Assembly (NCBI GenBank): GCA_965240325.2
Contig: OZ251223.1
Location: forward strand, 2,108,001-2,172,000
DNA from: Rebecca billardiae RCC1528
Taxonomy: Eukaryota > Protista > Haptophyta
Length of the DNA stretch: 64,000 nt
Reading direction: 5' to 3'
Shown piece after piece: positions 40 to 58,877 of this stretch; position 1 is the stretch's first letter; the number at the start of each line of letters is the position of its first letter. The notes beneath the pieces are model-generated. The model was not told where the DNA came from. It saw nothing but the letters and a program-made list of their open reading frames with translations, and did no database searches. The translations under genes and the position numbers were made by a program.

Positions 40-3000
40 CGACCTCGACGCGAGCGGCCTAACGGGCACCATCCCGACAACGATTGGACATATGAGTGCT
101 CTCACCGCGCTGTGCGCGCACCGCGCGTGCGTGCGCGCATCGCGGAGCGCACTGCGGAGGGCACCATGGACGCGTGGGGCTGATCCGCGCTCGCGCCACG
201 CGACGCGACGCGCGGCAGGCGGCTGCACAACAACACGCTCAGCGGCACGCTGCCCACGGAGATCGGCCTCGCCACGCGGCTCGAGCTGCTGTGAGCGCGC
301 GCGTGCACGCGGCGGGATGCGCGCTGGCGCGCTGGCGCGGGAGCGCTCGGACCTCACAGCCGCGTACCGCCTCTTCCCGTGCGCGCGCGTAGGGAACTAT
401 ACGCCAACGCCCTGACCGGCTTCGTACCCTCCGAGCTCGGGCTGCTGACCGCACTCACCGCCCTGTGAGCGCGCACGCGTGCGGCGGCATGCGCGCCGCG
501 CGACGCCGCCTCCGCGCGCCCGGCGGTTGGCAGTGGGGTGCTCCTGCACGCCGCGCAGCGCGGCGGGCTCACCGCGCGCGCGCGCGCGCGCCGCCCCGCC
601 GCCCTCCTCCTCGTGCAGGCGGATGAGCGACACGCAGCTCTCGGGCGTGCTGCCAGCGGCTGTGCTGGCCCTCCCCAGCCTCAGCACCAAGTGCGTTGCA
701 CGGCGCGCGCGCCCCTCCGCCCGCGCGCCCCTCCGCCGCCGCCACCGCCCAGCCGCGCTGACGCCCGCGCGCTCTGCGCTTCTCCGCGTGCACACACACA
801 CCGCGCGCGCGCGCGCGCAGCGACTGGGCGCGGACGGCACTCTGCGGTGGGACCGTCACCTTTGCGGCGACCGGGACGTACACATTCGACGACTGCAGCC
901 CGCCCAGCCCGCCGCCCTCGCCGCCGCCGAGCCCGCCGCCGAGCCCGCCGCCGAGCCCGCCGCCCTCGCCGCCGCCGCCACTACCGCCGCCGAGCCCGCC
1001 GCCATCGCCGCCGCCGCCACTACCGCCGCCGAGCCCGCCGCCCTCGCCGCCGCCCTCGCCGCCGCCCTCGCCGCCGCCCTCGCCGCCACCACCGTCGCCG
1101 CCACCCAGCCCTCCGCCCTCGCCGCCACCACCGTCGCCGCCACCCAGCCCGCCGCCCTCGCCGCCGCCGCCCTCGCCGCCGCCGAACCCGCCGCCCTCGC
1201 CACCGCCGCCGGGGCCGCCGCCGCGGCCGCCACCGAGCCCGCCGCCGCCGAGCCCGCCGCCGAGCCCGCCGCCGCCGAGCCCGCCCCCCTCGCCGCCGCC
1301 AGCTCCGCCGCCGCCGACCCCGCCGCCGAGCCCACCGCCCTCGCCACCGCCGCCCTCGCCGCCGCCCTTGCCGCCGCCGAGCCCTCCGCCTGCGCCGCCG
1401 CCGAGCCCGCCGCCGCCCTCGCCGCCGCCGAGCCCGCCGCCCTCGCCGCCGCCGCCGGCGCCACCGCCCAGCCCGCCGCCCAGCCCGCCGCCGCCGGCGC
1501 CACCGCCCTCGCCGCCTCCCAGTCCGCCGCCGCCCGTGCCGCCGCCGAGCCCGCCGCCGAGCCCGCCACCGTCGCCGCCGCCGTCAGCGCCGCCGAGCCC
1601 GCCGCCCAGCCCGCCGCCGTCGCCGCCGCCGTCGCCGCCGCCCAGCCCGCCACCGCCGCGCCCGCCGCCCTCGCCGCCGCCCAGCCCGCCGCCGCCGGCG
1701 CCGCCGCCCAGCCCGCCGCCCAGCCCGCCGCCCTCGCCGCCACCCGCGCCTCCGCCCAGCCCGCCGCCGCCCTCGCCGCCGCCCGCGCCGCCACCGAGCC
1801 CGCCGCCACCCTTGCCGCCACCGAGCCCGCCGCCACCTGTGCCGCCCCCGTCGCCACCGCCGAGCCCGCCGCCACCGGCTCCCCCGCCGGCCCCACCGCC
1901 CAGCCCGCCGCCGCCCTCGCCACCGCCCAGCCCACCGCCGAGCCCGCCACCGCCAGGCGACCCGCCGCATCCGCCGCCTCCGCCCAGCCCGCCTCCCAGC
2001 CCGCCGCCCAGCCCGCCGCCCAGCCCGCCACCGGGCCCGCCGCCATCGCCGCCGCCCAGCCCGCCGCCCAGCCCGCCGCCCAGCCCGCCGCCCTCGCCGC
2101 CGCCCAGCCCACCGCCGCCCAGCCCGCCGCCCAGCCCGCCGCCCTCGCCGCCACCCTCGCCGCCACCCAGCCCGCCGCCCTCGCCGCCGCCCTCGCCTCC
2201 GCCAAGCCCACCGCCGAGCCCGCCGCCGCCCACCCCGCCGCCGTCGCCACCGCCGAGCCCGCCGCCGAGCCCGCCGCCGCCCGCGCCGCCACCGAGCCCG
2301 CCGCCGAGCCCACCGCCCTCGCCGCCGCCCTCGCCGCCACCCAGCCCGCCGCCGAGCCCGCCGCCGTCTCCGCCGCCCTCGCCGCCGCCGAGCCCGCCGC
2401 CGAGCCCGCCGCCCTCGCCGCCACCGAGCCCGCCGCCGCCCTCGCCGCCGCCGAGCCCGCCGCCCTTGCCGCCGCCCTCGCCGCCGCCCTCGCCGCCGCC
2501 TTCGCCGCCGCCTTCGCCGCCGCCTTCGCCGCCGCCGAGCCCGCCGCCCTCGCCACCGCCAAGCCCGCCATCACCTCCGCCCAACAACCCACCGCCCAGC
2601 CCGCCGCCCTCGCCGCCGCCCTCGCCGCCGCCCTCGCCACCGCCCAGCCCACCGCCGTCCCCGCCGCCCAGCCCGCCGCCCAGCCCACCTCCGAGCCCGC
2701 CGCCCTCGCCACCGCCGCCCTCGCCGCCGCCCTCGCCGCCGCCCAGCCCGCCGCCCAGCCCACCGCCCAGCCCGCCGCCCGGTCCACCACCCTCGCCGCC
2801 GCCGAGCCCTCCGCCCTCGCCGCCGCCCTCGCCGCCGCCCTCGCCGCCGCCGCCCTCGCCGCCGCCTTCGCCACCACCGAGCCCGCCGCCGAGCCCACCG
2901 CCGAGCCCGCCGCCGTCGCCGCCACCAAGCCCGCCGCCGAGCCCGCCGCCCTCGCCGCCGCCCTCGCCGCCGCCGAGCCCGCCGCCCTCGCCGCCGCCCT

Positions 3001-6000
3001 CGCCACCGCCCTCGCCGCCACCACCGTCGCCGCCACCCCGCCCACCGCCCGCGCCGCCGCCGAGCCCACCGCCCGCGCCGCCGCCCTCACCGCCGCCCTC
3101 GCCACCGCCCTCACCGCCACCGCCCTCGCCGCCTCCTTCGCCACCACCGAGCCCGCCACCGAGCCCGCCGCCGAGCCCGCCGCCCTCGCCGCCACCGAGC
3201 CCGCCGCCGAGCCCTCCGCCCTCGCCGCCGCCGAGCCCGCCACCGAGCCCGCCGCCGCCGAGCCCTCCGCCCTCGCCCCCGCCCAGTCCACCACCCTCTC
3301 CGCCGCCGAGCCCGCCACCCTCGCCCCCGCCCAGTCCACCACCCTCTCCGCCGCCGAGCCCGCCACCCTCGCCCCCGCCCAGTCCACCACCCTCTCCGCC
3401 GCCGAGCCCGCCACCCTCGCCACCGCCCTCGCCGCCGCCGCCGAGCCCGCCGCCGAGCCCGCCGCCCTCACCACCGCCGAGCCCGCCGCCAAGCCCGCCA
3501 CCCTCTCCGCCGCCAAGCCCACCGCCTTCGCCTCCGCCACCGAGCCCGCCGCCCTCGCCGCCGCCCGCGCCACCGCCCTCGCCGCCGCCCTCGCCGCCGC
3601 CCTCGCCGCCGCCCTCGCCGCCGCCGAGCCCTCCGCCACCCTCGCCGCCGCCGTCGCCGCCGCCGTCGCCGCCGCCGAGCCCGCCGCCGAGCCCGCCGCC
3701 GAGCCCGCCGCCTTCACCTCCGCCGAGCCCGCCACCCTCGCCGCCGCCGAGCCCGCCACCCTCGCCGCCGCCATCGCCACCGCCGCCCTCGCCGCCGCCA
3801 AGCCCACCGCCCTTGCCACCGCCCTCGCCGCCGCCCTCGCCGCCGCCGTCGCCGCCGCCGAGCCCGCCGCCAAGCCCGCCGCCCTCGCCACCACCCAGCC
3901 CGCCGCCGAGCCCGCCGCCAAGCCCGCCGCCATCGCCACCGCCGCGCCCGCCGCCGAGCCCGCCGCCTAGCCCGCCACCGCCGAGCCCTCCGCCCTCGCC
4001 ACCGCCAAGCCCGCCGCCATCACCGCCGCCGTCACCGCCGCCGTCACCGCCGCCGTCACCGCCGCCGTCGCCACCGCCAAGCCCACCGCCAAGCCCGCCA
4101 CCAAGCCCACCGCCTTCGCCACCGCCGCCGAGCCCGCCGCCATCGCCGCCGCCGAGCCCGCCGCCGAGCCCGCCGCCAAGCCCGCCGCCTCCAAGCCCGC
4201 CGCCCAGCCCGCCGCCCTCGCCACCGCCGAGCCCGCCACCGAGCCCGCCGCCCTCGCCGCCGCCGAGCCCGCCGCCCTCGCCACCTCCGAGTCCACCGCC
4301 ATCGCCACCGCCGAGTCCGCCACCGAGCCCGCCGCCGTCACCACCGCCTCCTTCGCCGCCGCCGAGCCCGCCACCAAGCCCGCCACCAGTGCCACCGCCG
4401 AGCCCGCCGCCGAGCCCACCACCCTCGCCACCGCCATCGCCGCCCCCAAGCCCACCGCCCTCGCCGCCGCCCAGTCCTCCGCCCTCGCCGCCACCGAGCC
4501 CGCCGCCCTCGCCGCCGCCATCGCCGCCGCCATCACCGCCGCCATCCCCACCGCCGCCGCTCCCGCCGCCGTCGCCGCCACCGAGCCCGCCGCCCTCGCC
4601 GCCGCCGAGCCCGCCGCCGTCGCCGCCGCCGAGCCCGCCGCCGAGCCCGCCGCCAAGCCCGCCGCCGAGCCCGCCCCCGAGCCCGCCGCCCTCGCCACCG
4701 CCAAGTCCACCGCCGCCGAGCCCGCCGCCATCGCCACCGCCGAGCCCGCCGCCGAGCCCGCCGCCCAGCCCACCACCATCGCCACCGCCGAGCCCGCCGC
4801 CCTCGCCGCCGCCCAGTCCGCCACCCAGCCCGCCGCCCAGCCCACCGCCCAGCCCGCCACCCTCGCCACCGCCCCCATCGCCGCCGCCAAGCCCGCCGCC
4901 ATCGCCACCACCGTCGCCTCCGCCGAGCCCTCCGCCGAGCCCGCCTCCCTCGCCGCCACCGTCGCCGCCGCCCTCGCCGCCGCCCTCGCCGCCCCCCTCG
5001 CCGCCCCCCTCGCCGCCGCCGAGCCCGCCGCCGCCGAGCCCGCCGCCGTCGCCACCGCCGAGCCCGCCGCCGAGCCCGCCGCCGAGCCCGCCGCCGTCGC
5101 CGCCGCCGAGCCCGCCGCCGTCGCCGCCTCCGAGTCCACCGCCGCCCAGCCCGCCGCCCAGCCCGCCGCCCAGCCCGCCGCCCAGCCCGCCGCCCAGCCC
5201 GCCGCCGAGCCCGCCGCCGTCGCCTCCACCCTCGCCGCCGCCCAGTCCGCCGCCGAGCCCACCGCCAAGCCCACCGCCCAGCCCGCCGCCCTCGCCGCCA
5301 CCACCCAGCCCGCCACCCAGCCCACCACCCAGCCCGCCGCCTTCGCCGCCGCCGAGCCCGCCCCCCTCGCCGCCGCCGAGCCCGCCGCCCTCACCACCAC
5401 CTAGCCCGCCCCCGCCTAGCCCGCCGCCGAGCCCACCGCCATCGCCGCCGCCCAGTCCGCCGCCGTCGCCACCGCCGAGCCCGCCGCCGAGCCCGCCGCC
5501 GAGCCCGCCGCCCTCGCCACCGCCCTCGCCGCCACCCAGCCCGCCGCCCAGCCCGCCGCCAGGCCCGCCGCCCTCACCGCCGCCGTCGCCGCCGCCGTCG
5601 CCGCCGCCCTCACCGCCGCCCTCACCGCCGCCGAGCCCGCCGCCAAGTCCACCGCCGAGCCCGCCGCCGTCGCCGCCGCCGTCGCCGCCACCGAGCCCGC
5701 CGCCGCCAAGCCCGCCGCCTTCGCCGCCGCCCAGCCCGCCGCCGTCCCCGCCGCCGAGCCCACCGCCGAGCCCACCGCCCTCGCCGCCACCGAGTCCGCC
5801 GCCGAGTCCGCCACCGCCAAGCCCGCCGCCCAGCCCGCCGCCCAGCCCGCCGCCCTCGCCGCCTCCATCACCGCCGCCGCCATCGCCGCCGCCATCGCCG
5901 CCGCCAAGCCCGCCGCCTTCGCCACCGCCAAGCCCGCCGCCCAGCCCGCCGCCCAGCCCGCCGCCCAGCCCGCCGCCCTCTCCACCGCCCAACCCGCCGC

Positions 6001-45819: not shown

Positions 45820-46071
45820 TTACCCAGCGCGCTCCTGGGCGAACGCCTCGGCCGCTTCCGCGGCCACGGTGAGCTTCGCCGGCTCGGCCGGCGCCTGGCC
45901 CTGCGCCGAGGCGGCCTTCCCGCCGCCGCGCCCACCGATGGTCTCCACCGCGGACAGCATCCACTCGTTGGCCTTGAGGGCGCCCGAGAGGGGAGACGCC
46001 TCCGGCACCTGCGGACGCGGCGCAACGTGGGGGGCGCAGCGCGGCGGGCTGGACCGTGTCACGGCGCGCGC

Positions 46072-46108
<37 letters not shown>

Positions 46109-49100
46109 GCGCAGGGGTCCACCGGGCGAGAGGCGCGCGGGGACAGCGCACCTGCGCTACGCATGCCACCTTGCCGTCGCTCGCAGCGAGCGCGAGGCAG
46201 GGCAGCGCAGGCACCGCCTTGGCCACCTGCTTGAGCACCGACTGTACGCCCTTCCCGTCCAGGCCCTCGCCGAGGCTGAGGACGGCGAAGGGCTGGCCGG
46301 CGCCGACGGCTGCCTCCGCGTCGCTCACGGCGGCGGCGGCGACAGCGTTGGCGCGCGCGGCGGCCTCGGCCTTGGCCGCGGCGACGGCCGCCTTCTCGAG
46401 CTTGGCGCACTCCGCGCGCACCGCCGCCTTCACCGCGACGGGCGCGCCCGATCCGTCCACGCGCGTGCGCAGCGCGACCACGTCCTCTTTGCCCACGCCC
46501 TTCCGCCCCTTCAGCTGCGCGAGCTCGGCCTCGAGCTCCCGACCCTCGGCGATCGCGGCGGCGGCGGCGTCGCGCGTCACGCCGACCACGCGCCGCACGC
46601 CCTTTGCGATGCCCGTCTCCTCGACGATGGCAAACGCGCGAGCGTCAGACGTGCGCTGAACGTGCGTGCCGCCGCAGAACTCGATCGAGCTGCCGGCCCA
46701 CGCCTCGTCGGTCGGCGAGGCGAGCAGCTCGTCCACGGGCACGCCGACCGAGACGACGCGCACGGGGTCGGGATACGCCTCGCCGAAGACGGCGCGGAGC
46801 GCGCTCACCGCCGTCGCGTCGCCGAGCGGCGCGAGCTGCGCGTACACGGGCGCGTCCTGCTCGATCACTGCGCGCACGGTGCCCTCAACCGCCTCCAGCT
46901 CCGCGCCGCTCATCGGCGCGTTGTGCGAGAAGTCGAAGCGCAGCTTGGACTCGTCGACGAGCGAGCCGCGCTGGTCGACGCCATCGCCGAGCACCTTGCG
47001 CAGCGCAAAGTTGAGCACGTGCGTCATCGAGTGGTTGGGCGCAATCGCGCGCCGCCGCGCCGCGTCGACGGCCGCGACCGCGGCCGCGCCCAGCTGGAGC
47101 TCCCCGCGGGAGACGCGCCCGACGTGCACCACGTACCCGGCGTACACCTGCGTGTCCTGCACGTCGAACGCCCACGCGCCCGCGCCGGCGCCGTCGGCGG
47201 AGAGCACGCCCGAGTCGCCCACCTGCCCGCCCGCCTCGGCGTAGAAGCTCGTGCGGTCGAGGATGAGCCCGACCGTGCCGCTGGCCGCGCTCACCGCCTC
47301 GCCAGCCGGCACGAAGCGCGAGCCGTCGTACACGGCGGCGACGGCCGCGCCGCGCAGCGGGAGCGGCGCGCCGTCCTCCGCGCGCGCGTACTTGGGCTCG
47401 TCGTCCGTGGGCGACACGCCCGCCGCGCTCAGCGCCGCCGTCTGCTCCGCCTGCAGCTCGAGCGAGCGGCCGTCGGCGCCGCTCGCCTTTGCCGAGCGCG
47501 CCGCCGCCGAGCGCTCGCGCTGCGCGGCCATCTCCTGCTCAAAGCCCGCGCCGTCGACGCGCAGCCCCTTCTCGCGCGCCATCAGCTCGGTGAGGTCGAG
47601 GGGGAACCCCATCGTGTCGTACAGGTAGAAGGCCGTCGCGCCGTCGATCGTGCCCGCGCCGCTCGACGCGAGCGCGTCGGCGCGCTTCTCGAACTCGCGG
47701 ATGCCGCGCGTGAGCATCGACGAGAAGGACGACTCCTCGTCAGCCAGCACCTCCGCGATCTGGGGGAGGCGGGCGTGGAGCTCGGGGAACTGCGCGCCGT
47801 ACTCGGCGGCGACGACGGGCGCGAGCCGCGCGAAGAAGCCGTCGGGCGCGTCGAGCTTCTGCTTGCCGTACCGCACGGCGCGCCGCAGGATGCGCCGGAG
47901 CACGTACCCGCGGCCCTCGTTGGACGGCATCGCGCCGTCTGCGATCGCAAAGCTGAGTGTGCGGATGTGGTCGGCGATCACGCGGTACGCCGTGTCGCGC
48001 ATGCCCGCGTCCTCCGCGCCGAGCTTGCCGGCGTACGGCGGCGCGCCGGTCTCGGCCCGGATCGCCTCGAACAGCGGCGTGAAGACGTCCGTGTCGTAGT
48101 TCGACTGCCGGTCCTGCAGCACGGACACGAGCCGCTCGAAGCCCATCCCCGTGTCCACATGGCACGCGGGCAGTCGCTTGAGCTCGCCCGAGACCTCGCG
48201 GTTGAACTGGATGAAGACGAGGTTCCAGACCTCGAGCACGAGCGGGTCGTCCTGGTTCACCAGGGCCGAGGCGTCGCGCCCGCCCACGCGGTCGTAGTGC
48301 AGCTCGGAGCACGGCCCGCACGGGCCCGTGTCGCCCATCTCCCAAAAGTTGTCCTGCGGCGCGGCGCGGCGCGGCGGCAGCCGGAGCGCCGCGCCGAGCG
48401 CAGCCGGCCGCGCGTGAGCCGCGTGCGGCGCGTGTCCACGGCGCGCGCGGCTCGCAGCCGTGCCGCGCCCGGCCGCTGGCGCCGGCGCGCACACGCGCCG
48501 GCGCCTCGCGCGCGCGCCCAGCCGCGCGCGGCGCGCTGAGCGTGCGGGTGCGCGCGCGGCGCACCTTTGCATTCCCCGGGAGCACGTGGCCCTCGGGCAG
48601 CAGCCGCAGCCACATGTCGCGCGCCTCGTGGTCGGGCTCGAGCCCCTGCGCCTCGTCGCCCTCGAAGTAGGTGGCGTACAGCCGCTCCTTCTCCAGCCCG
48701 TACTCGCGCGTCAGCAGCTCGAACGCCCACTCGATCGCCTCCGCCTTGAAGTAGTCGCCAAAGCTCCACGTGCCGAGCATCTCAAAGAACGTGTGGTGGT
48801 ACGTGTCGAAGCCGACGTCCTCGAGGTCGTTGTGCTTGCCGCCGGCGCGGATGCACTTCTGCGAGTTCACCGCGCGCTTCAGCTTGGCGAGCGGGCTGCT
48901 CGGGTCCACCTGCCCCAGGAAGATCGGCTTGAACTGGTTCATGCCCGCGTTCGCAAAGAGGAGGGTCGGGTCATCGAGCGGCACGACCGGCGACGACTTG
49001 TAGTTGGTGTGGTCGTACTTGGACTGGAAGAAGTCGATGAATTTGCTCCGCACGTTCACCGCCGTCCATTGCTGCTGCGCCCCCGTCAGCTCCGCCGCGC

Positions 49101-50797: not shown

Positions 50798-53700
50798 TCA
50801 GTTCTTGCGCCGCTTGCTGCCCAGGCTGAGACTGAGCCGACGCTTGGGAGCGCGACGGGGCGCACCGGCACCGTCATCTGCTGGCGCCTGGTGATGTGGA
50901 GCAGTCTCAGCAGCCGCTGCTGCGTGCCGTTCGGTGACGGCATCGGGAGCCTGGTTGGCGTGCGCGTGCCCAGTCGCCGCGCGTGGCGCGGCAGCGGCAC
51001 TGACCCGCACCGGAGCCGGTTGGCACGAGCCTGGCCGGCGTTTGGGCCGGCGCGCGTCGCCTGGCAGAGCCGACGGTCTCTCGCGCGGCGCTCTCACAAA
51101 GTCGCCGTCGCTGTCGCTGTCGCTCCTGACCCCGCGGGCCGACGCCGCCTCGGCCGTTGGCTGCTCGGCATCGTGCGCCTCCGCCCGCGCGTCACGTACG
51201 CCGCCACCAGTCGTCGCTGCGTCGTCGGCGTGATTTGCCGCCGATGGCGGGCGCGCTGCGCCGAGGGCGCCGCTGGCCGTCCTCGGCTCAGCTGGCGGCG
51301 CGATGGCATCCGCATCGAGATCGTCGTCGATGCTCACGCGGCACACGCAGCAGTCCACGCCCGCAGCCAGCAGCAGGTCGAACCAGCCGCGCTGCTGGTC
51401 GGACAGCCGGTCGTTGGCCGACTTGACCTCGACGAGTCGCGCCGCGCCAAACACGCCGCCGCCGCGCGCGGCCACGGCCGTGCCGCCGCCGCTTGCACAC
51501 GCAGCCGGTGCTGCAGCGGCCGGGGCGCACAGGGGAGCGTCGGCGCGCGCGAGCATGGGAGAGGCGTCGCCGCCGGGCGGTGCGGCGGCAGGCGCGGCCA
51601 TGCCGGGCGAGGCGGTGCTCGGCGGCAGCAGCAACGCCCGCACAGCGGCGCCGCCCGTGCCGCCTGCGCTCCCAGAGAGCGGTGTCACGCCGGCCGCCCC
51701 GCTCGCGCCGGCGGCGCGACTCGCGTTCTGGGCGTCGATCGGAGGCTCGAGGCGTCGCCAGAGGACGAGGTCGGGCATGCCCCGCGCCCACCCGCCGTAG
51801 TCCTCCGCCAGCACGCGCAGGATGGCGCCGAGCGCCGCCCCGCCCAAGCAGCCGGCTATCTCTGCCAACGGCTCGGCCGACGGCCAGCGCGCCCAGCTGA
51901 TGCCGCGGCACAGCTCGCCCGCGTGCTCGGCGTGGGCCGCGCGCACCTCGGCCGCGAGCCGCGCGCCCGCCATCGCGCGCAGCTCGCGCAGCCGCGCGTC
52001 GAGCGCGCCGCGCCGCGCCGCGTAGAAGGCGCCGCCGCCGCTCGCCAGGTCGAGCGGCGCCGAGAGGCAGCGCGTGGGCAGCACGTCCGGAACGGCCGAG
52101 TCGAAGATGGTCCGCCACAGCAGCAGCGCAAAGAGCGCGGTGAAGACGCCCGTCTCGGCGTGCACGCCCTGCCAGCCCGCCTGCGCGCGGTGCTCCTGTA
52201 GCACGAGCTCCTCGACGGAGCACGGCACGCCGTCGCCCTCCAGGCCCATGAAGGCGAGCTTGCCGCCGCGCGCGCGCGGCTTGGCGCCGGCTGCGGGCGG
52301 CAGCGGCCGCGCGCGCAGCCGGATGACCGGGGGCTCCGCGGGCAGCGGCGGGAGCGGCGCGCTCGCGCCGCCGCGCGCGGGCGAGGCGCGCGCGAGCGCG
52401 CGGGCGAGCGCGTCGAGCGCCGGCGTCTCCGCCCGGCCGAGCCCCGCCGAGGAGGCGGGCACCGCCGCGTCGGCGCGCGCTCGCGCCGCGGCCGAGGCGC
52501 GCGGCGCCGAGACGAGCCGCTCTCGCGCGGCGGCGAGCCTGTGCGCGCGGCGCAGCAGGCCGACGCGGTCGCCGGTGGCCACGGCCGGGTCTGCGAGCGC
52601 GGCGCGTGCGAGGGCGTCGCACGCGCGCGCGTCGACCCTCCCGGCGCGCGCGCCGTCGATCATCAGCCGCGTCCACCAGTGCCCGCGGCGCGCGGGGCCG
52701 AAGGGCGAGAGCAAGCACAGCGCCGCCGCCTCGGCCGCCTCCGCGGCTCGGCCCAGCCGGCTGAGGAGAGAGCTGTGCACGGTGAGCAGCGCACACGCGG
52801 CGCAGCCGGGGGCGAGCGAGGCGGCGAGGGGGCGGCGCGCGCGCACCGACGCCCAGCCCTCCGCCTCGTCCGCGCCGACGGCGGCCGCCTCCTCCGAGGC
52901 GTGCGGCGGCGCGCACAGCTCGCGCGCCGCGGCTGCCAGCGCGCGCCTCAGCCAGCCGCCGTCCGCGCTGGCGCCGCAGCCCTCCGCCTCCGCCTCCTCC
53001 GCCTCCTCCGCCTCCTCCGCCTCCTCCTCTGCGGGGGCGGCGGCGGTGCTGCCGCCACTGGGCCACTGCGCCAGCGGCGCGGCGCGCAGGGCGCAGGCAT
53101 CCGGCGTCGGCGGCGCGCGCGCGGCTGCGCGCAGCGCCAGCGCGCGCAGCCCCTCGCTCGCGCGCGCGGCGAGCAGCTCGCACTCGGCGACGCGTCCCGC
53201 CTCCAGCGCGCCCTCGTACTGCCGGGCGAGCGCGCATGCGGCTTCGTGCCGATCCAGCGCCGCTCGGGAGGCGAAGGGCGGAGCGGGCCGAGGCGGCGTG
53301 TGCGCGCTGGGCTCATGCGCTGCCGCGCGCGCCTCCTCCCCCGCCACCGCGCCCGCGACCGCCGGCGCCGCGGCCGGCGCGGCCGGCGCGGCCTCCGCGG
53401 CCGGCGGCGCGCACGCCGCGGCCGGCGCGCCCGCGCCGTCGCCGCGCGCGACGCTCGGCCAGGGTGTGTAGCTGGGGAAGCGCACCGCGCCCATCTCAGC
53501 GGCGGCGGCGAGGGAGAGACCGTCGCCCGCGGAGGCGTGCGGCGATGCGCAGAGCACGAGCCGCTCCGCGCGGGCGAGCGCGTCGAGCGCCTCGTCCCGG
53601 AGCAGCAGCACCGGGCCGGAGAGCGCGCCAATCCGCCGAAGCAGCGGCCGTGGCCGAGAGAGGCGGCCGACCACGCCGCCCGCGGCCGCGCGACGCGCCG

Positions 53701-54631
53701 ACTGGGGCGCGCCGAGCGAGGCGGCGTGCTCCGGAGCCGCGTCGGGCGCGCCCACGCCCAGCCGCACGAGCAGAGCGGCCTCCAGCACCGCGCGCTGCCC
53801 ACCGCCCCGGCCAACGCCCGACGCGCCCGCCTCGGCGCGCTTCCTCGCGCTCGGGGCGGCGTCCGGCGCGCCTCGGCGCGCCGGCTGCACGCCCGCGGCC
53901 GCGGCAATCTGCGCGAGCTCGGCGGCGGAGAGGGTGCCGAGCTGCAGCGCGAGCGCGAGCGCGTCGCTGCACGGCGCGTCGTCGCACACCAGCTTGACGA
54001 AGCCCGCGCCCTCCAGCTCGGCCGCCGCCCCGTCCGTGTCCTGCGCCTCGCCCACCTCGCGGTACCGGCCGCGCAGGGCGGCCAGGCGGAACGCAGTCGG
54101 CCGGCGCGCAAACAGCCGGGCGTAGAGCGCGCGCGCGCGGAGCGAGAGCGCGAGGAAGCGGCGGATCCACGCGTGCTCGCCCTCGCTGAGGAGCTCCACG
54201 TCGCGCGCGAGTGCCGCGTGCAGCAGCTCCTCGAGCTGCTGCGTGTGCGCGCCGCCGTGCGCTGCCCACCACGGCAGTGCATCCTCGCCCTCTGCGCCCT
54301 CGTCGGCGTCGTCGCCGCTGGTGCGCGCGCCAGCGTCGCCCGCGGGCGAAGGGGGCGGAGTGACAGCCACGGCGGCCGCGGGGGGCGCCGCCCGATCCGC
54401 TGCGCTCGCCGGCGCGGCCCGAGCGCCGAGCGCCGGCGGCAGGAAGGCGAGCAGCGACGTCTGCCGGAGGGGGCCGTGTGCAGCGGGCTGCGCGGGGCGC
54501 GCGGGAGAGGCGAGCCAAGACTCCGGGCGGGCGGCGCCGTCGCGGTGGCCCTCGCGATGGCGCACCCGCGCTGCGAAGCCGCCAAGCCAGCTGCGGCCCA
54601 CGAGAGTCTGCGCGTTGGTGAGCGCGACCAT
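50798..54631 (-). CDS. FAN1: Fanconi-associated nuclease 1 (VRR-NUC domain)
   Basis: LYARLFARR, RRGHWWTRL, CSVEELVL..GWQGVHAE..LFALLLW..IF, APLDL, LAEDY..GMPDLVLW, RLVEVKSANDRLSDQQRGW. The start ATG is uncertain. Confidence 0.9.
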   Translation of the reverse strand: MVALTNAQTLVGRSWLGGFAARVRHREGHRDGAARPESWLASPARPAQPAAHGPLRQTSLLAFLPPALGARAAPASAADRAAPPAAAVAVTPPPSPAGDAGARTSGDDADEGAEGEDALPWWAAHGGAHTQQLEELLHAALARDVELLSEGEHAWIRRFLALSLRARALYARLFARRPTAFRLAALRGRYREVGEAQDTDGAAAELEGAGFVKLVCDDAPCSDALALALQLGTLSAAELAQIAAAAGVQPARRGAPDAAPSARKRAEAGASGVGRGGGQRAVLEAALLVRLGVGAPDAAPEHAASLGAPQSARRAAAGGVVGRLSRPRPLLRRIGALSGPVLLLRDEALDALARAERLVLCASPHASAGDGLSLAAAAEMGAVRFPSYTPWPSVARGDGAGAPAAACAPPAAEAAPAAPAAAPAVAGAVAGEEARAAAHEPSAHTPPRPAPPFASRAALDRHEAACALARQYEGALEAGRVAECELLAARASEGLRALALRAAARAPPTPDACALRAAPLAQWPSGGSTAAAPAEEEAEEAEEAEEAEAEGCGASADGGWLRRALAAAARELCAPPHASEEAAAVGADEAEGWASVRARRPLAASLAPGCAACALLTVHSSLLSRLGRAAEAAEAAALCLLSPFGPARRGHWWTRLMIDGARAGRVDARACDALARAALADPAVATGDRVGLLRRAHRLAAARERLVSAPRASAAARARADAAVPASSAGLGRAETPALDALARALARASPARGGASAPLPPLPAEPPVIRLRARPLPPAAGAKPRARGGKLAFMGLEGDGVPCSVEELVLQEHRAQAGWQGVHAETGVFTALFALLLWRTIFDSAVPDVLPTRCLSAPLDLASGGGAFYAARRGALDARLRELRAMAGARLAAEVRAAHAEHAGELCRGISWARWPSAEPLAEIAGCLGGAALGAILRVLAEDYGGWARGMPDLVLWRRLEPPIDAQNASRAAGASGAAGVTPLSGSAGGTGGAAVRALLLPPSTASPGMAAPAAAPPGGDASPMLARADAPLCAPAAAAPAACASGGGTAVAARGGGVFGAARLVEVKSANDRLSDQQRGWFDLLLAAGVDCCVCRVSIDDDLDADAIAPPAEPRTASGALGAARPPSAANHADDAATTGGGVRDARAEAHDAEQPTAEAASARGVRSDSDSDGDFVRAPRERPSALPGDARRPKRRPGSCQPAPVRVSAAAAPRAATGHAHANQAPDAVTERHAAAAAETAPHHQAPADDGAGAPRRAPKRRLSLSLGSKRRKN

Positions 54632-55180
54632 GTCGTTGGCCGGTTGGGACGTCAGTCGCGCTCGCTCGCGCACTCGCGCTGGCCGCTGCGCCGCTGCCGC
54701 CCCCGGACCCGGACTGGCCTTACTACGGACTGGCCCTGGGCGTCGCGTAGGTAGCCTTCTAAGGCGCCCGCTTGCTGAGGTCGTCACAGGCTACTATGTG
54801 ACACTATGACATGCATAGGAAGCGTTATGACACATCAGGAACAGACACTCTGCCATTACAAGTAGCAGACCCAAATCCTTCCCGACGGAGTACTGTAGTC
54901 GCGGATGCGTCACGCGTGCCCCGCGACGGCGACCCGAGCGTGCGCCCTCAGTGCGACCCAGCCGACCCGCCTGAAGGCGCGCCGGCCCGCGCCGGGGGCG
55001 CCGCTGCTTCCGGTCGGAGGGCTGCTCCCCAGTCGGACCCCAACGTCGACTGCACCACCGGTGTCATGCCTGCTACGAGCGAGAACCGAGGACGCTTCCG
55101 CGCTCGAAGCTCGCCACGCAGCGCGTGCTCCCGCTGTGCGGGCAGCGTGGAGATAGTACTGGTAGCAGCCATCAATGCGC

Positions 55181-56276: not shown

Positions 56277-58877
56277 TCAGTGCTGCTGCACGGCGCCGCA
56301 GCCCTGCACGACCCGCGCGTACGAGCGCCGGAGCCACGAGCGGTAGCTGGACGACGCACAGCTGGTGCACTCGAGGCCGAGGGCGTTCAAGTGCAGGTCG
56401 TACGCGGAGAACAGCAGAGTCTTGACGGCAGCGTCGTGCGGCTCAACATTCGCTGCCATCTGCTTCGTGACGTAATCGGCAAAGTGCACGAGCACGCACG
56501 CCGACGAGCGCTCGGACGCTGGTGCCAAGGTCGACGACGGCTCCACTGCTGCCGATCTGGCCTGCAGCGCGCGCTGCACAATCGTGGCGACGGCGAGGTG
56601 GTCTTGGTGAGTCCCCTTCCAGTTGGGGTAGAAGCGGGCGTCCGCGTCGTGGTGCGTAAACACTGCGAGCTGCCTGCCCGCTGGGGCGGCGCGCTCGGCC
56701 GAGTCGATCATCGCCGCCACGCTGGTCACAAGGCTGCCCACGCTGAACGAGTTGTTCGTCTCGCTGTCGAGCGCGCGGAGCCGCGCTGAGGCATCCGTGC
56801 TCGCAAGGAGCGAGGCCAGCGTCTTGGAGCCCTTACGCGCGCGGTACGTGGTGTTCTGCGCACTCCCTCGCTGCACCAGCGCGTCGGGGAGACGGAAAAA
56901 GGCGTGCGTGACCACTGCTCCGTTGGGACCGTCGATGTCGACCGTCTGGATTGAGTGCTCTCCATACTGCCGCCTGCGCATGTGTTCGCTCGGCGATGGG
57001 CGGAAGGGGTCCTGCCGGTAGAGAGCGCGCACAGAGGCCAAGCTTGCCTGCTCCCTACCTCGCCAGTACAGCTCGCCGCGCCCAGCGTCACCTGCTGAGA
57101 GCACGGCGATGACCGTGTGCTGCGCCGGCAGCGCAAAGGCACGCGCAGCATGCTCGCCCGCAAAGAGCTGCCAGTCGTCTGCGTGGGCGACAATGAACAC
57201 GCGCGTCGCGTTGGCGTGCACTTGCGCCGCCACCGTGTGGCTGGCAACGAGCTCGTTGCTTGGCCGCTCCTCCGGAGGCGGCGCCTGCGCTGCAGAGCGA
57301 CACGACATCTGCACGTGCCAGCCCCACTCGTCGCCGACTGCACCGAACGGCGTGGTGTCCGATGCGAACAGGATCTCAGGGCCCTCGCGCACAGCCACCC
57401 GCCAGGGCTCCGCGTGTGCACCAGAGCAGCGCTCCACGCGGCGCATCAGCACTGGGCCAAACTGGCCCAGCCACCGCGCCCCTGTGACTGATGTTACCTG
57501 CCGGCGCGCGTGGCTCGAGACAACATTGGGCCGGCGACGCTGCCGCTTCTGCGTGTGCTCGTCGGCCGCCAGATCCGCCTCGCCGGGCGCCAGTGCAGGC
57601 GGCCCAGTCACGTTGAGCCGAGTGAAGCACCTGCTCACGCACCCTTGCGCGATGCTGCTGCTGTCGGCGAGAGCAGCGCGGGCCAACGCGCCGCCCGACC
57701 CACCGTTTGCGGCTGCTGCACCCACGTGCCAAGCGGCGCGCAGGCGCAGCTCGATGTCGATCATTTTTTGGAGTCGCACCGGGTTGGAGGGCACTGTCGC
57801 CAGCTCCTCCGCCGAGCAAAGCGCGTGCTGCGCAGACTCGGCGCTTGCATCACTGATAGTGTAGCGCGCCCCTGCTTGGTGCTGTTGTTGCTGCTGTGAG
57901 GAGCGGGCAGCTGGATCAGGCGTGCTGTGATGCACTCCTCCTGCTGCTGCATCCTGCGTCGTGGGGCAGCGCTGCTTGACGATGAACTTGTACGAATGCG
58001 AGGCCCACGACGCCAGCGGAGCGTGGCACGAATATAGTGGGCGTGAGCCGTCGTCATTGCTCACCGTTCCGCCAGCCGCGTCTGGCGCGTTTGGCGCGCA
58101 GGAACGTCCCGCGCGTGATTGGGTGACGCTGCCGCGCAGGTGCGTGTAGCGCATGCGCAGGCACGCGGCGAGCTGCATCGCGCGCTGAAAGAAGTGCGGC
58201 CCTGCGACCTCCATCACGTCCCACCAGCGTGCGGTATTCTCCAGGCTGTCCAGCACCAGCTGAAAGAACGGGTGCCCTGGCTCTGCTGCAGCGAAGCCTT
58301 GCGTGACCCACGTCAAGCTCTCAGAGGAACCCGACAGCAGCAGCCGCACATCGGCACTTTCGAACCACGCGTCTGGAAGCGGTCGAAGCAGCTTCATGTC
58401 ACGGTCTGCGTACAGCCCGCCGACGCACAGGAGGATCACATACCGCGCCGCGTCGGCGCGATGGATGTCGAGGGGGTACTCGTCGTATGTTCGGAGCAGC
58501 CTCGGCACGCACTCCGCAATGAGCGCGCGCACGGCGGAGTTGTTCCACACGACATGCCTGTGCGCGGGCATCAATTCGGGCCATGCCGCAGAGCGCCGCG
58601 CCAGCTCGTGCTCCGCGCCCGTCTTGGAAGTCGCCGATGAGGTGTGCACCGCCACCTGGTGGATGACTCGCGGGATGCCCACGCCCGAGTACGTGTGCGG
58701 TCGGTGGCTGGGGGGGCCGTGCAGGCGGCGCTCATGCAGCTGTGCGGAGGCATCGTGCAGGCACGACGAAGACGCTGACTGGACGCTGCGCAGCTCCGCC
58801 GCTGCTGCCGTCAGACCGACGGCGCACGCCGTGGTCGCCCAAAGCGCCGCCAGCAGGAGCTGCCGCAGTGATGCCAT
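56277..58877 (-). CDS. Secretory-pathway GT32 (DXD, OCH1/SUR1/A4GNT-like) glycosyltransferase fused to a PIG-L/LmbE-family de-N-acetylase
   Basis: Signal MASLRQLLLAALWATTACA. GT32 motifs IPRVIHQ, RADAARYVILLCVGGLYADRD, AAEPGHPFF, AGPHFF. PIG-L motifs FIVAHADDWQLF, SAGDAG..WRGREQ, FFRLPD, HQDH. Confidence 0.85.
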   Translation of the reverse strand: MASLRQLLLAALWATTACAVGLTAAAAELRSVQSASSSCLHDASAQLHERRLHGPPSHRPHTYSGVGIPRVIHQVAVHTSSATSKTGAEHELARRSAAWPELMPAHRHVVWNNSAVRALIAECVPRLLRTYDEYPLDIHRADAARYVILLCVGGLYADRDMKLLRPLPDAWFESADVRLLLSGSSESLTWVTQGFAAAEPGHPFFQLVLDSLENTARWWDVMEVAGPHFFQRAMQLAACLRMRYTHLRGSVTQSRAGRSCAPNAPDAAGGTVSNDDGSRPLYSCHAPLASWASHSYKFIVKQRCPTTQDAAAGGVHHSTPDPAARSSQQQQQHQAGARYTISDASAESAQHALCSAEELATVPSNPVRLQKMIDIELRLRAAWHVGAAAANGGSGGALARAALADSSSIAQGCVSRCFTRLNVTGPPALAPGEADLAADEHTQKRQRRRPNVVSSHARRQVTSVTGARWLGQFGPVLMRRVERCSGAHAEPWRVAVREGPEILFASDTTPFGAVGDEWGWHVQMSCRSAAQAPPPEERPSNELVASHTVAAQVHANATRVFIVAHADDWQLFAGEHAARAFALPAQHTVIAVLSAGDAGRGELYWRGREQASLASVRALYRQDPFRPSPSEHMRRRQYGEHSIQTVDIDGPNGAVVTHAFFRLPDALVQRGSAQNTTYRARKGSKTLASLLASTDASARLRALDSETNNSFSVGSLVTSVAAMIDSAERAAPAGRQLAVFTHHDADARFYPNWKGTHQDHLAVATIVQRALQARSAAVEPSSTLAPASERSSACVLVHFADYVTKQMAANVEPHDAAVKTLLFSAYDLHLNALGLECTSCASSSYRSWLRRSYARVVQGCGAVQQH

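Follow-up and report, generated by a model that had tools for sequence, protein, structure and literature searches.

The gene described here lies on the minus strand of a 64,000-nucleotide stretch of DNA (hereafter the window) from Rebecca billardiae RCC1528, covering positions 2,108,001 to 2,172,000 of contig OZ251223.1 in assembly GCA_965240325.2. It is read as an intact, single-exon gene of the secretory pathway that encodes two enzymes in one chain, a GT32 glycosyltransferase followed by a metal-dependent deacetylase of the LmbE/PIG-L family, whose two active sites would work in sequence on one and the same glycoconjugate. From the sequence and the structural models, this reading was given a probability somewhat above one half (about 0.55). 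Both enzyme families are known, the architecture that joins them is new, and the fusion is so far found in one genome.

A single minus-strand open frame runs from 58883 to 56277, and translation from its first ATG, at 58877, yields a protein of 866 amino acids (aa) with no internal stop. The GC content at third codon positions (GC3) was 0.80 in the N-terminal third, 0.75 in the middle third and 0.83 in the C-terminal third, in each case well above the GC content at second positions, and in the DNA flanking the open reading frame (ORF) GC content fell to 52–55%. Combined, the codon-position pattern and the drop in the flanks indicate that the ORF is one coding unit and that its ends look like gene ends. 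A preliminary description of this DNA, made from the letters and their open reading frames, had proposed an intronless fusion of GT32 and LmbE/PIG-L domains in one ORF. The single frame without stops, the uniform GC3 and the intact catalytic motifs in both halves uphold that proposal.

The identity of the first enzyme was assessed by profile, alignment and structure. The Pfam family PF04488 (Gly_transf_sug) matched aa 98–172 with 47.2 bits, for a cut-off of 23, and reached 52 bits in a six-frame search. In an alignment of the GT32 part of the fusion protein with 13 relatives (alignment A2), residues H73, Y131-D132, R145-Y146, G153-G154, Y156, D158 and D160 were invariant. The AlphaFold model built on A2 showed a predicted local distance difference test score (pLDDT) of 80–95 across most of aa 66–250. 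Its best structural match in the PDB was the fungal GT32 mannosyltransferase Och1 (9n3s; Foldseek E 1.4e-8), followed by other retaining GT-A enzymes, namely SetA, YeGT, PaTox and glycogenin; Och1 was also the sole PDB match at the sequence level (phmmer E 0.0034 over 49 residues). The Gb3_synth region of A4GALT and A4GNT was not detected in a Pfam scan of the fusion protein. The score above the cut-off, the invariant aspartates of the D158-R-D160 motif and the Och1-like fold bear out the GT32 domain with DxD motif that had been described at the outset. GT32 is a retaining family and its characterised members are mostly mannose or galactose transferases; to our knowledge, A4GNT is the only one among them to use UDP-N-acetylglucosamine (UDP-GlcNAc). 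At least 20 genes with a PF04488 domain were counted in the genome, several of them in very long open frames (1280–1649 aa).

The C-terminal domain was analyzed in the same way. Scanned alone, it matched PF02585 (PIG-L) with 30.7 bits (cut-off 28.2), with profile positions 1–128 of 129 aligned to aa 560–770, and a six-frame search that included its neighbours in frame gave 32.2 bits. When the domain by itself served as query, a word search returned 19 relatives, most of them 260–310 aa long; PF02585 was present in 17 of these. Relatives from this search and from a full HMMER search reached E values from 1e-11 to 1e-25. The defining motif of LmbE-like enzymes is a metal-binding site formed by HXD1D2 and a further histidine (PMC4101496). 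In an alignment of 18 sequences, algal domain included (alignment A1), the algal protein kept the subfamily residue in all 21 invariant columns, among them A-H565-A-D567-D568, AGDAG, R-E, F-R-L-P-D and H757-x-D759-H760. A PDB sequence search with the domain gave no match, and its profile gave a weak match to LnmX alone, in which the HQDH motif falls on the PDH of the LnmX chain. The AlphaFold2 model of the domain had a predicted template modelling score (pTM) of 0.79 and matched 22 LmbE-like PDB entries with VIA Z scores of 13.0–15.4, against 7.3 for the next fold; these entries included the diacetylchitobiose deacetylase Dac, the teicoplanin deacetylases (Orf2*), BshB, MshB, LnmX, TT1542 and GalB. 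In Foldseek, all 27 of the best matches listed for this model were LmbE-like. The deacetylase with AHADD and HQDH motifs of the preliminary description is therefore confirmed by the invariance of both motifs in A1, by the LmbE fold and by the PIG-L score of the domain alone. Likewise, the Pfam check that it had proposed for both domains gave PF04488 and, for the domain alone, PF02585 above their cut-offs, and both folds were matched by structure. Judged by sequence and model, the C-terminal domain would be a complete LmbE-like zinc-type amidohydrolase, with deacetylase activity as its predicted function.

As to the location of the two domains, aa 6–28 contained the sole 19-residue Kyte–Doolittle window above 1.6 in the 866-aa protein, and aa 2–39 were modelled by AlphaFold2 as one helix. 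The protein has five N-glycosylation sequons and 17 cysteines in all. As the protein has a single hydrophobic segment, at its N-terminus, both enzyme domains should sit in the lumen of the endoplasmic reticulum (ER) or Golgi, or outside the cell. Of the signal peptide claimed earlier, the N-terminal hydrophobic segment stands, as the only one in the protein, but it may also be a type II anchor. The features of the gene and its product are collected in Table 1.

Table 1. Features of the GT32–LmbE fusion gene, with positions in the window
Feature	Residues	Positions	Strand	Remarks and basis
Complete coding sequence	866 codons + stop	56277..58877	(-)	No intron needed; ORF list, start/stop check, GC3, flank GC
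N-terminal hydrophobic segment	aa 6-28	58794..58862	(-)	Cleavable signal peptide or type II signal anchor; hydropathy
GT32 (Gly_transf_sug) GT-A catalytic domain	aa 66-250	58128..58682	(-)	Pfam PF04488, AlphaFold2 model, Och1 structural match
DxD motif	D158-R159-D160	58398..58406	(-)	D158 and D160 invariant in A2; translation checked
Cysteine-bearing C-terminal module of the GT32 subfamily	aa 283-526	57300..58031	(-)	Low-complexity inserts; ends EWGWHVQMSC; paralogues and P0021-P0026
Inter-domain linker	aa 527-555 (~29 aa)	57213..57299	(-)	Between last conserved GT32-module residues and first deacetylase strand
LmbE-like (PIG-L family) metal-dependent hydrolase domain	aa 556-866	56280..57212	(-)	Pfam PF02585, AlphaFold2 model, fold search, relatives
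HXDD part of metal motif (two metal ligands and general base)	H565-A-D567-D568	57174..57185	(-)	Invariant in A1
HxDH motif; H760 expected third metal ligand	H757-Q-D759-H760	56598..56609	(-)	H, D and H invariant in A1

The region between the two catalytic domains (aa ~250–555) had been taken for a long linker. It matched no Pfam family above chance, and its nature was clarified by two paralogues in the same genome. One, on contig C20 (G000:C20:885031-886557; locus L002, 1450-3033), shares 68% identity with the fusion protein over aa 10–309 and 51% over aa 346–555; the other, on contig C12 (G000:C12:346198-347406; locus L003, 1477-2766; protein P0020), shares 50%. Both extend through the supposed linker, end soon after a common WGW...SC motif and are devoid of a deacetylase. 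Six marine or metagenomic relatives (P0021–P0026; 394–465 aa) have the cysteine pattern and the terminal W-G-W in common with them, again without a deacetylase. Most of the region is thus a conserved module of paralogues and relatives, and what remains of the long linker is a genuine one of about 29 aa. On C12, a long TC/CT-rich simple repeat that would translate as (SL)n directly follows the paralogue (L003, about 3000–3300).

Sequences downstream of the C20 and C12 paralogues gave chance-level matches only when searched for a relic of the deacetylase. Since the two paralogues and the six outside relatives lack this domain and no relic lies downstream, its gain by one of three GT32 paralogues is the parsimonious account. 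Long GT32 relatives were found fused to GT2, Anp1, Glyco_transf_7C or PAN, none to a deacetylase. In a scan of metagenome DNA, 80 loci matched the deacetylase part alone (23–45% identity in the best segment), and the junction motif was present in none of the 80. The whole protein, used as query in a word search, gave no matches, perhaps from low-complexity words filling the candidate list. The possibility that the fusion had already been characterised was considered in the preliminary description; literature searches found no account of a GT32–LmbE fusion, and an oomycete secretome paper does no more than tabulate counts of CE14, the CAZy family of PIG-L-type enzymes.

The gene is placed on a chromosome-scale contig of at least 3.2 Mb, in a 72-Mb assembly of 41 contigs. 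Its downstream neighbour (window 50801-54787, minus strand) is a FAN1-like nuclease with VRR_NUC, FAN1_HTH and FAN1_TPR domains in a 1329-aa frame, and further downstream lies an alanyl-tRNA synthetase gene (window 46062-48572, minus strand). The size of the contig and the eukaryotic neighbours exclude bacterial contamination. A functional gene cluster around the fusion was considered and rejected, these two neighbours being unrelated to it.

The relatives of the deacetylase domain were then compared. Most of its closest matches are metagenome proteins without a taxon label; the nearest relatives that carry a label are bacterial, and a protein atlas also places bacterial PIG-L clusters nearest. 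The motifs AH[AQ]DDWQLF, AGDAG, FRLPDG and DHxDH, which together form the signature of the subfamily, are all present in the algal domain. The shorter signature AH[AQ]DD[WD][QL]LF was found in more than 330 bacterial loci, from Bacteroidota (many of them Chitinophagaceae and Flavobacteriaceae), Gemmatimonadota, Oligoflexia, Saccharibacteria, Chloroflexota and Alphaproteobacteria. Larger bacterial relatives carry fn3 domains or the tail of the type IX secretion system (T9SS) and several have signal peptides, which indicates that much of the bacterial subfamily works outside the cytoplasm. No functional study of this subfamily was found in the literature. The protein atlas lists, at rank 15 and with a score of 0.93 to the deacetylase domain, an Ascomycota-only cluster of 339-aa hypothetical proteins, so that fungal members of this overwhelmingly bacterial subfamily may exist.

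Among 80 bacterial loci, 23 have a conserved, co-oriented GT4 glycosyltransferase gene at most 200 bp upstream of the deacetylase gene; these cases come largely from one lineage and do not amount to 23 independent ones. A Pfam scan of two such upstream neighbours identified GT4 in both. In Chitinophagales-type genomes the arrangement forms a conserved two-gene unit in which the GT4 gene is followed directly by a PIG-L deacetylase of the AHADDWQLF type (loci L011, L013, L014, L019, L020, L024-L027, L029, L030, L033, L037, L049, L053, L054, L056, L057, L060, L062 and L065); in L019 the unit is followed by genes for an S-adenosylmethionine (SAM) methyltransferase and a DUF2264 protein. In Mucilaginibacter sp. 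E4BP6 (L022, 2476-6771), a deacetylase gene of this type is preceded by genes for a GT2, for an alpha/beta hydrolase and for a Condensation domain that stands alone, an arrangement that suggests a cluster for the tailoring of a glycolipid or glycopeptide. The GT4 neighbours scored below the cut-offs of the NCBIfam BshA and MshA models, and no NCBIfam model, bshB and mshB included, matched the whole fusion protein, its deacetylase domain or the bacterial relatives. None of these 80 bacterial loci had a GT32 gene beside or fused to the deacetylase. The bacterial pairing of GT4 and deacetylase serves as a precedent for coupling the two activities, but it involves two genes and another glycosyltransferase family.

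In six-frame profile searches, the fusion gene was the sole PF02585 match in the genome. Searches of the same kind with four markers of the glycosylphosphatidylinositol (GPI) pathway, PIGA (PF08288), PIG-C/GPI2 (PF06432), PIG-M (PF05007) and Gaa1 (PF04114), gave no match in the genome. These searches were intron-blind, and their positive control was the family GT22 in the same genome, not a eukaryote known to have GPI genes. GT22 (PF03901) gave two matches, at C3:3243059-3244393 and C14:2192845-2193822, with E values of 8e-78 and 2e-44; two is the number to be expected with ALG9 and ALG12 alone. The alga may thus be without GPI anchoring. The catalytic domain of canonical PIG-L faces the cytosol. 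Identity of the fusion's deacetylase with the canonical GlcNAc-phosphatidylinositol deacetylase PIG-L was rejected: the fusion gene is the only PF02585 match in the genome, its nearest labelled relatives are bacterial, its orientation is inferred to be lumenal and the four GPI markers were not found in the six-frame searches. That the deacetylase is of bacterial type, as first suggested from its motifs, is supported by the signature of a large bacterial subfamily, by its being the only PIG-L-family match in the genome and by the lack of matches to the GPI markers.

Acquisition by horizontal transfer had also been suggested at the outset. A bacterial origin is plausible from the sequence, given that the subfamily is bacterial and that the genome has no eukaryotic PIG-L. 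On the other hand, in the tree, the algal deacetylase sits on an end branch of 1.34 changes per column, has an odd composition and falls in no supported group, and for these reasons no donor lineage was named. Its identity to bacterial relatives is 24–33% over the full length and at most ~33% to any relative in the tree alignment, and the codon composition of the deacetylase part is fully host-like.

Known systems offer partial parallels to the fusion. In MshA/MshB, BshA/BshB and PIG-A/PIG-L, GlcNAc is attached by a glycosyltransferase and then deacetylated by an LmbE-like zinc enzyme, and MshB, BshB and PIG-L resemble the algal deacetylase in fold and in the HXDD and H metal motif. By contrast, MshA, BshA and PIG-A belong to GT4, with a GT-B fold, whereas the algal transferase is a GT32 enzyme of GT-A type; moreover, the known pairs are separate proteins in or facing the cytoplasm, whereas the algal pair is joined and lies behind a signal peptide or anchor. 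A pathway of the MshA-MshB or BshA-BshB type was rejected, given the GT32 instead of GT4 partner and the lack of NCBIfam bshB or mshB matches. The bacterial subfamily described above comprises the nearest sequence relatives, shares the signature motifs and is often exported and often encoded beside a glycosyltransferase; the algal domain differs from it by its fusion to GT32. On the transferase side, Och1, the inositol phosphorylceramide (IPC) mannosyltransferases Sur1/Csg1, A4GALT and A4GNT share PF04488, the DxD motif and the GT-A fold with the algal enzyme. All of these are Golgi enzymes with an N-terminal anchor, and we know of no GT32 protein that carries a deacetylase. Sequence similarity to Och1 is low, and the algal subfamily differs from it in having a cysteine-bearing C-terminal module of its own.

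Two further comparisons concern the secretory pathway of eukaryotes. NDST, the heparan sulfate N-deacetylase/N-sulfotransferase, is a Golgi-lumenal enzyme that deacetylates GlcNAc residues of a glycan and is fused to the enzyme of a neighbouring step (PMC10864358). It differs in that the fused partner, a sulfotransferase, works once the acetyl group is gone and does not itself transfer the sugar, and the sequence and fold searches made here revealed no relation between NDST and the fusion protein. In plants, glucosamine (GlcN)-containing GlcN-GlcA-IPC is predicted to arise by deacetylation of a GlcNAc-bearing glycosyl inositol phosphorylceramide (GlcNAc-GIPC), to which the GlcNAc is transferred in the Golgi, and the passage on this step names no deacetylase (PMC9113257). 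Transfer followed by deacetylation on an assembled glycolipid is what is proposed there as well as here, as an analogy only; the plant transferase, GINT1, is a GT64, and no plant relative of the deacetylase subfamily was seen in our searches.

In the preferred order of events, the hydrophobic N-terminus would bring the GT32 and deacetylase domains into the ER/Golgi lumen or outside the cell, where the GT32 domain would add an alpha-linked N-acetylhexosamine to a glycoconjugate and the tethered LmbE domain would then strip this sugar of its acetyl group to give a hexosamine with a free (cationic) amine. Transfer as the first step is favoured by the substrates of LmbE-like enzymes, all of which, in a review of 2014, act on N-acetyl- or N-acyl-glucosamine cores (PMC4101496). 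It is favoured too by the position of the deacetylase after the glycosyltransferase, both in the algal chain and in bacterial operons, and by the same logic in MshA/MshB, BshA/BshB and PIG-A/PIG-L. The N-acetylhexosamine donor, the order of transfer and de-N-acetylation, and the products named in the preliminary description, GIPC-like lipids or SPPP proteins, are proposals drawn from the domain fusion and from analogy.

Several observations weigh against this reading. By analogy with the family, most of whose members transfer mannose or galactose, an N-acetylhexosamine donor would not be the default for GT32. In the whole protein, PIG-L scored 27.1 bits, slightly below the cut-off of 28.2. D568 and H760, the second and third metal ligands, are 192 residues apart, compared with 97–148 in characterised enzymes (PMC4101496), a spacing that is attributed to a low-confidence insert at aa ~665–710 of the model. 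GalB, which is a hydratase, has the LmbE fold without a deacetylase role. Signal peptide and anchor were weighed from hydropathy alone, and synthesis of the protein as a single polypeptide is a prediction. When 1.84 billion cluster representatives were searched in full with HMMER, no protein among the best 150 of 3331 matches had both domains, so that no orthologue attests to conservation of the join.

The two active sites might act on one glycoconjugate in the reverse order, the LmbE domain deacetylating a GlcNAc-bearing lipid or glycan before the GT32 domain adds alpha-mannose or alpha-galactose at or near the resulting glucosamine. The nearest solved GT32 structure is that of a mannosyltransferase, Och1, the donors of characterised GT32 enzymes given above agree with such a step, and in the GPI pathway the addition of mannose has to await the action of PIG-L. 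However, the glycosyltransferase comes first in the algal chain and the GT4 gene precedes the deacetylase gene in bacteria, which weakly favours transfer first, and we regard the reversed order as a serious rival, though an unlikely one. A tether that serves for shared location only, with different substrates for the two domains or with the LmbE domain hydrolysing something other than the GT32 product, such as chitin-like oligomers or another amide, appears distinctly unlikely. It would fit the frequent occurrence of bacterial members as stand-alone proteins that carry fn3 domains or T9SS tails, in the manner of secreted enzymes acting on polysaccharides, as well as the variety of fusion partners among GT32 relatives (GT2, Anp1, Glyco_transf_7C) and the presence of amidases and a hydratase within the LmbE fold. 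As a rule, however, fused enzymes catalyse steps of the same pathway; moreover, the linker is short, at ~29 aa, and a glycosyltransferase gene recurs beside members of the deacetylase subfamily in bacteria.

It is also conceivable, though very improbable, that the long ORF does not represent one functional gene and is instead an untranscribed or decaying fusion, a chance read-through of two genes or an assembly error. Long spurious ORFs are common in this GC-rich DNA, and the exact fusion protein is not in a collection of 15 billion proteins, although the C12 paralogue is present there. Against this, both domains are complete, in the same frame and in the right order, all invariant residues are retained despite the long branch of the deacetylase, GC3 far exceeds second-position GC in all three parts, and homology stops exactly at the ends of the ORF.

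The preferred reading, an intact two-enzyme gene whose product acts by transfer and then deacetylation, leads to a broader proposal that we put forward only tentatively, as doubtful at present: that this would be the first eukaryotic Golgi-lumenal de-N-acetylase of LmbE type, derived from bacteria and joined to the transferase that makes its substrate, so as to equip a glycolipid or a glycoprotein of the cell surface with a free-amine (cationic) hexosamine, in an alga without GPI anchors. Few systems are known in which glycans are N-deacetylated within the secretory pathway of eukaryotes, NDST in heparan sulfate being one example. As a singleton in one genome, the fusion has a significance limited to that extent. 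If the proposal is true, it would provide a working model for the deacetylase predicted in the synthesis of plant GlcN-GIPC and a first functional handle on a large bacterial deacetylase subfamily, and it would constitute a compact, testable enzyme pair, pointing to glycans with free-amine hexosamine in haptophyte-like algae, about whose surface chemistry little is known.

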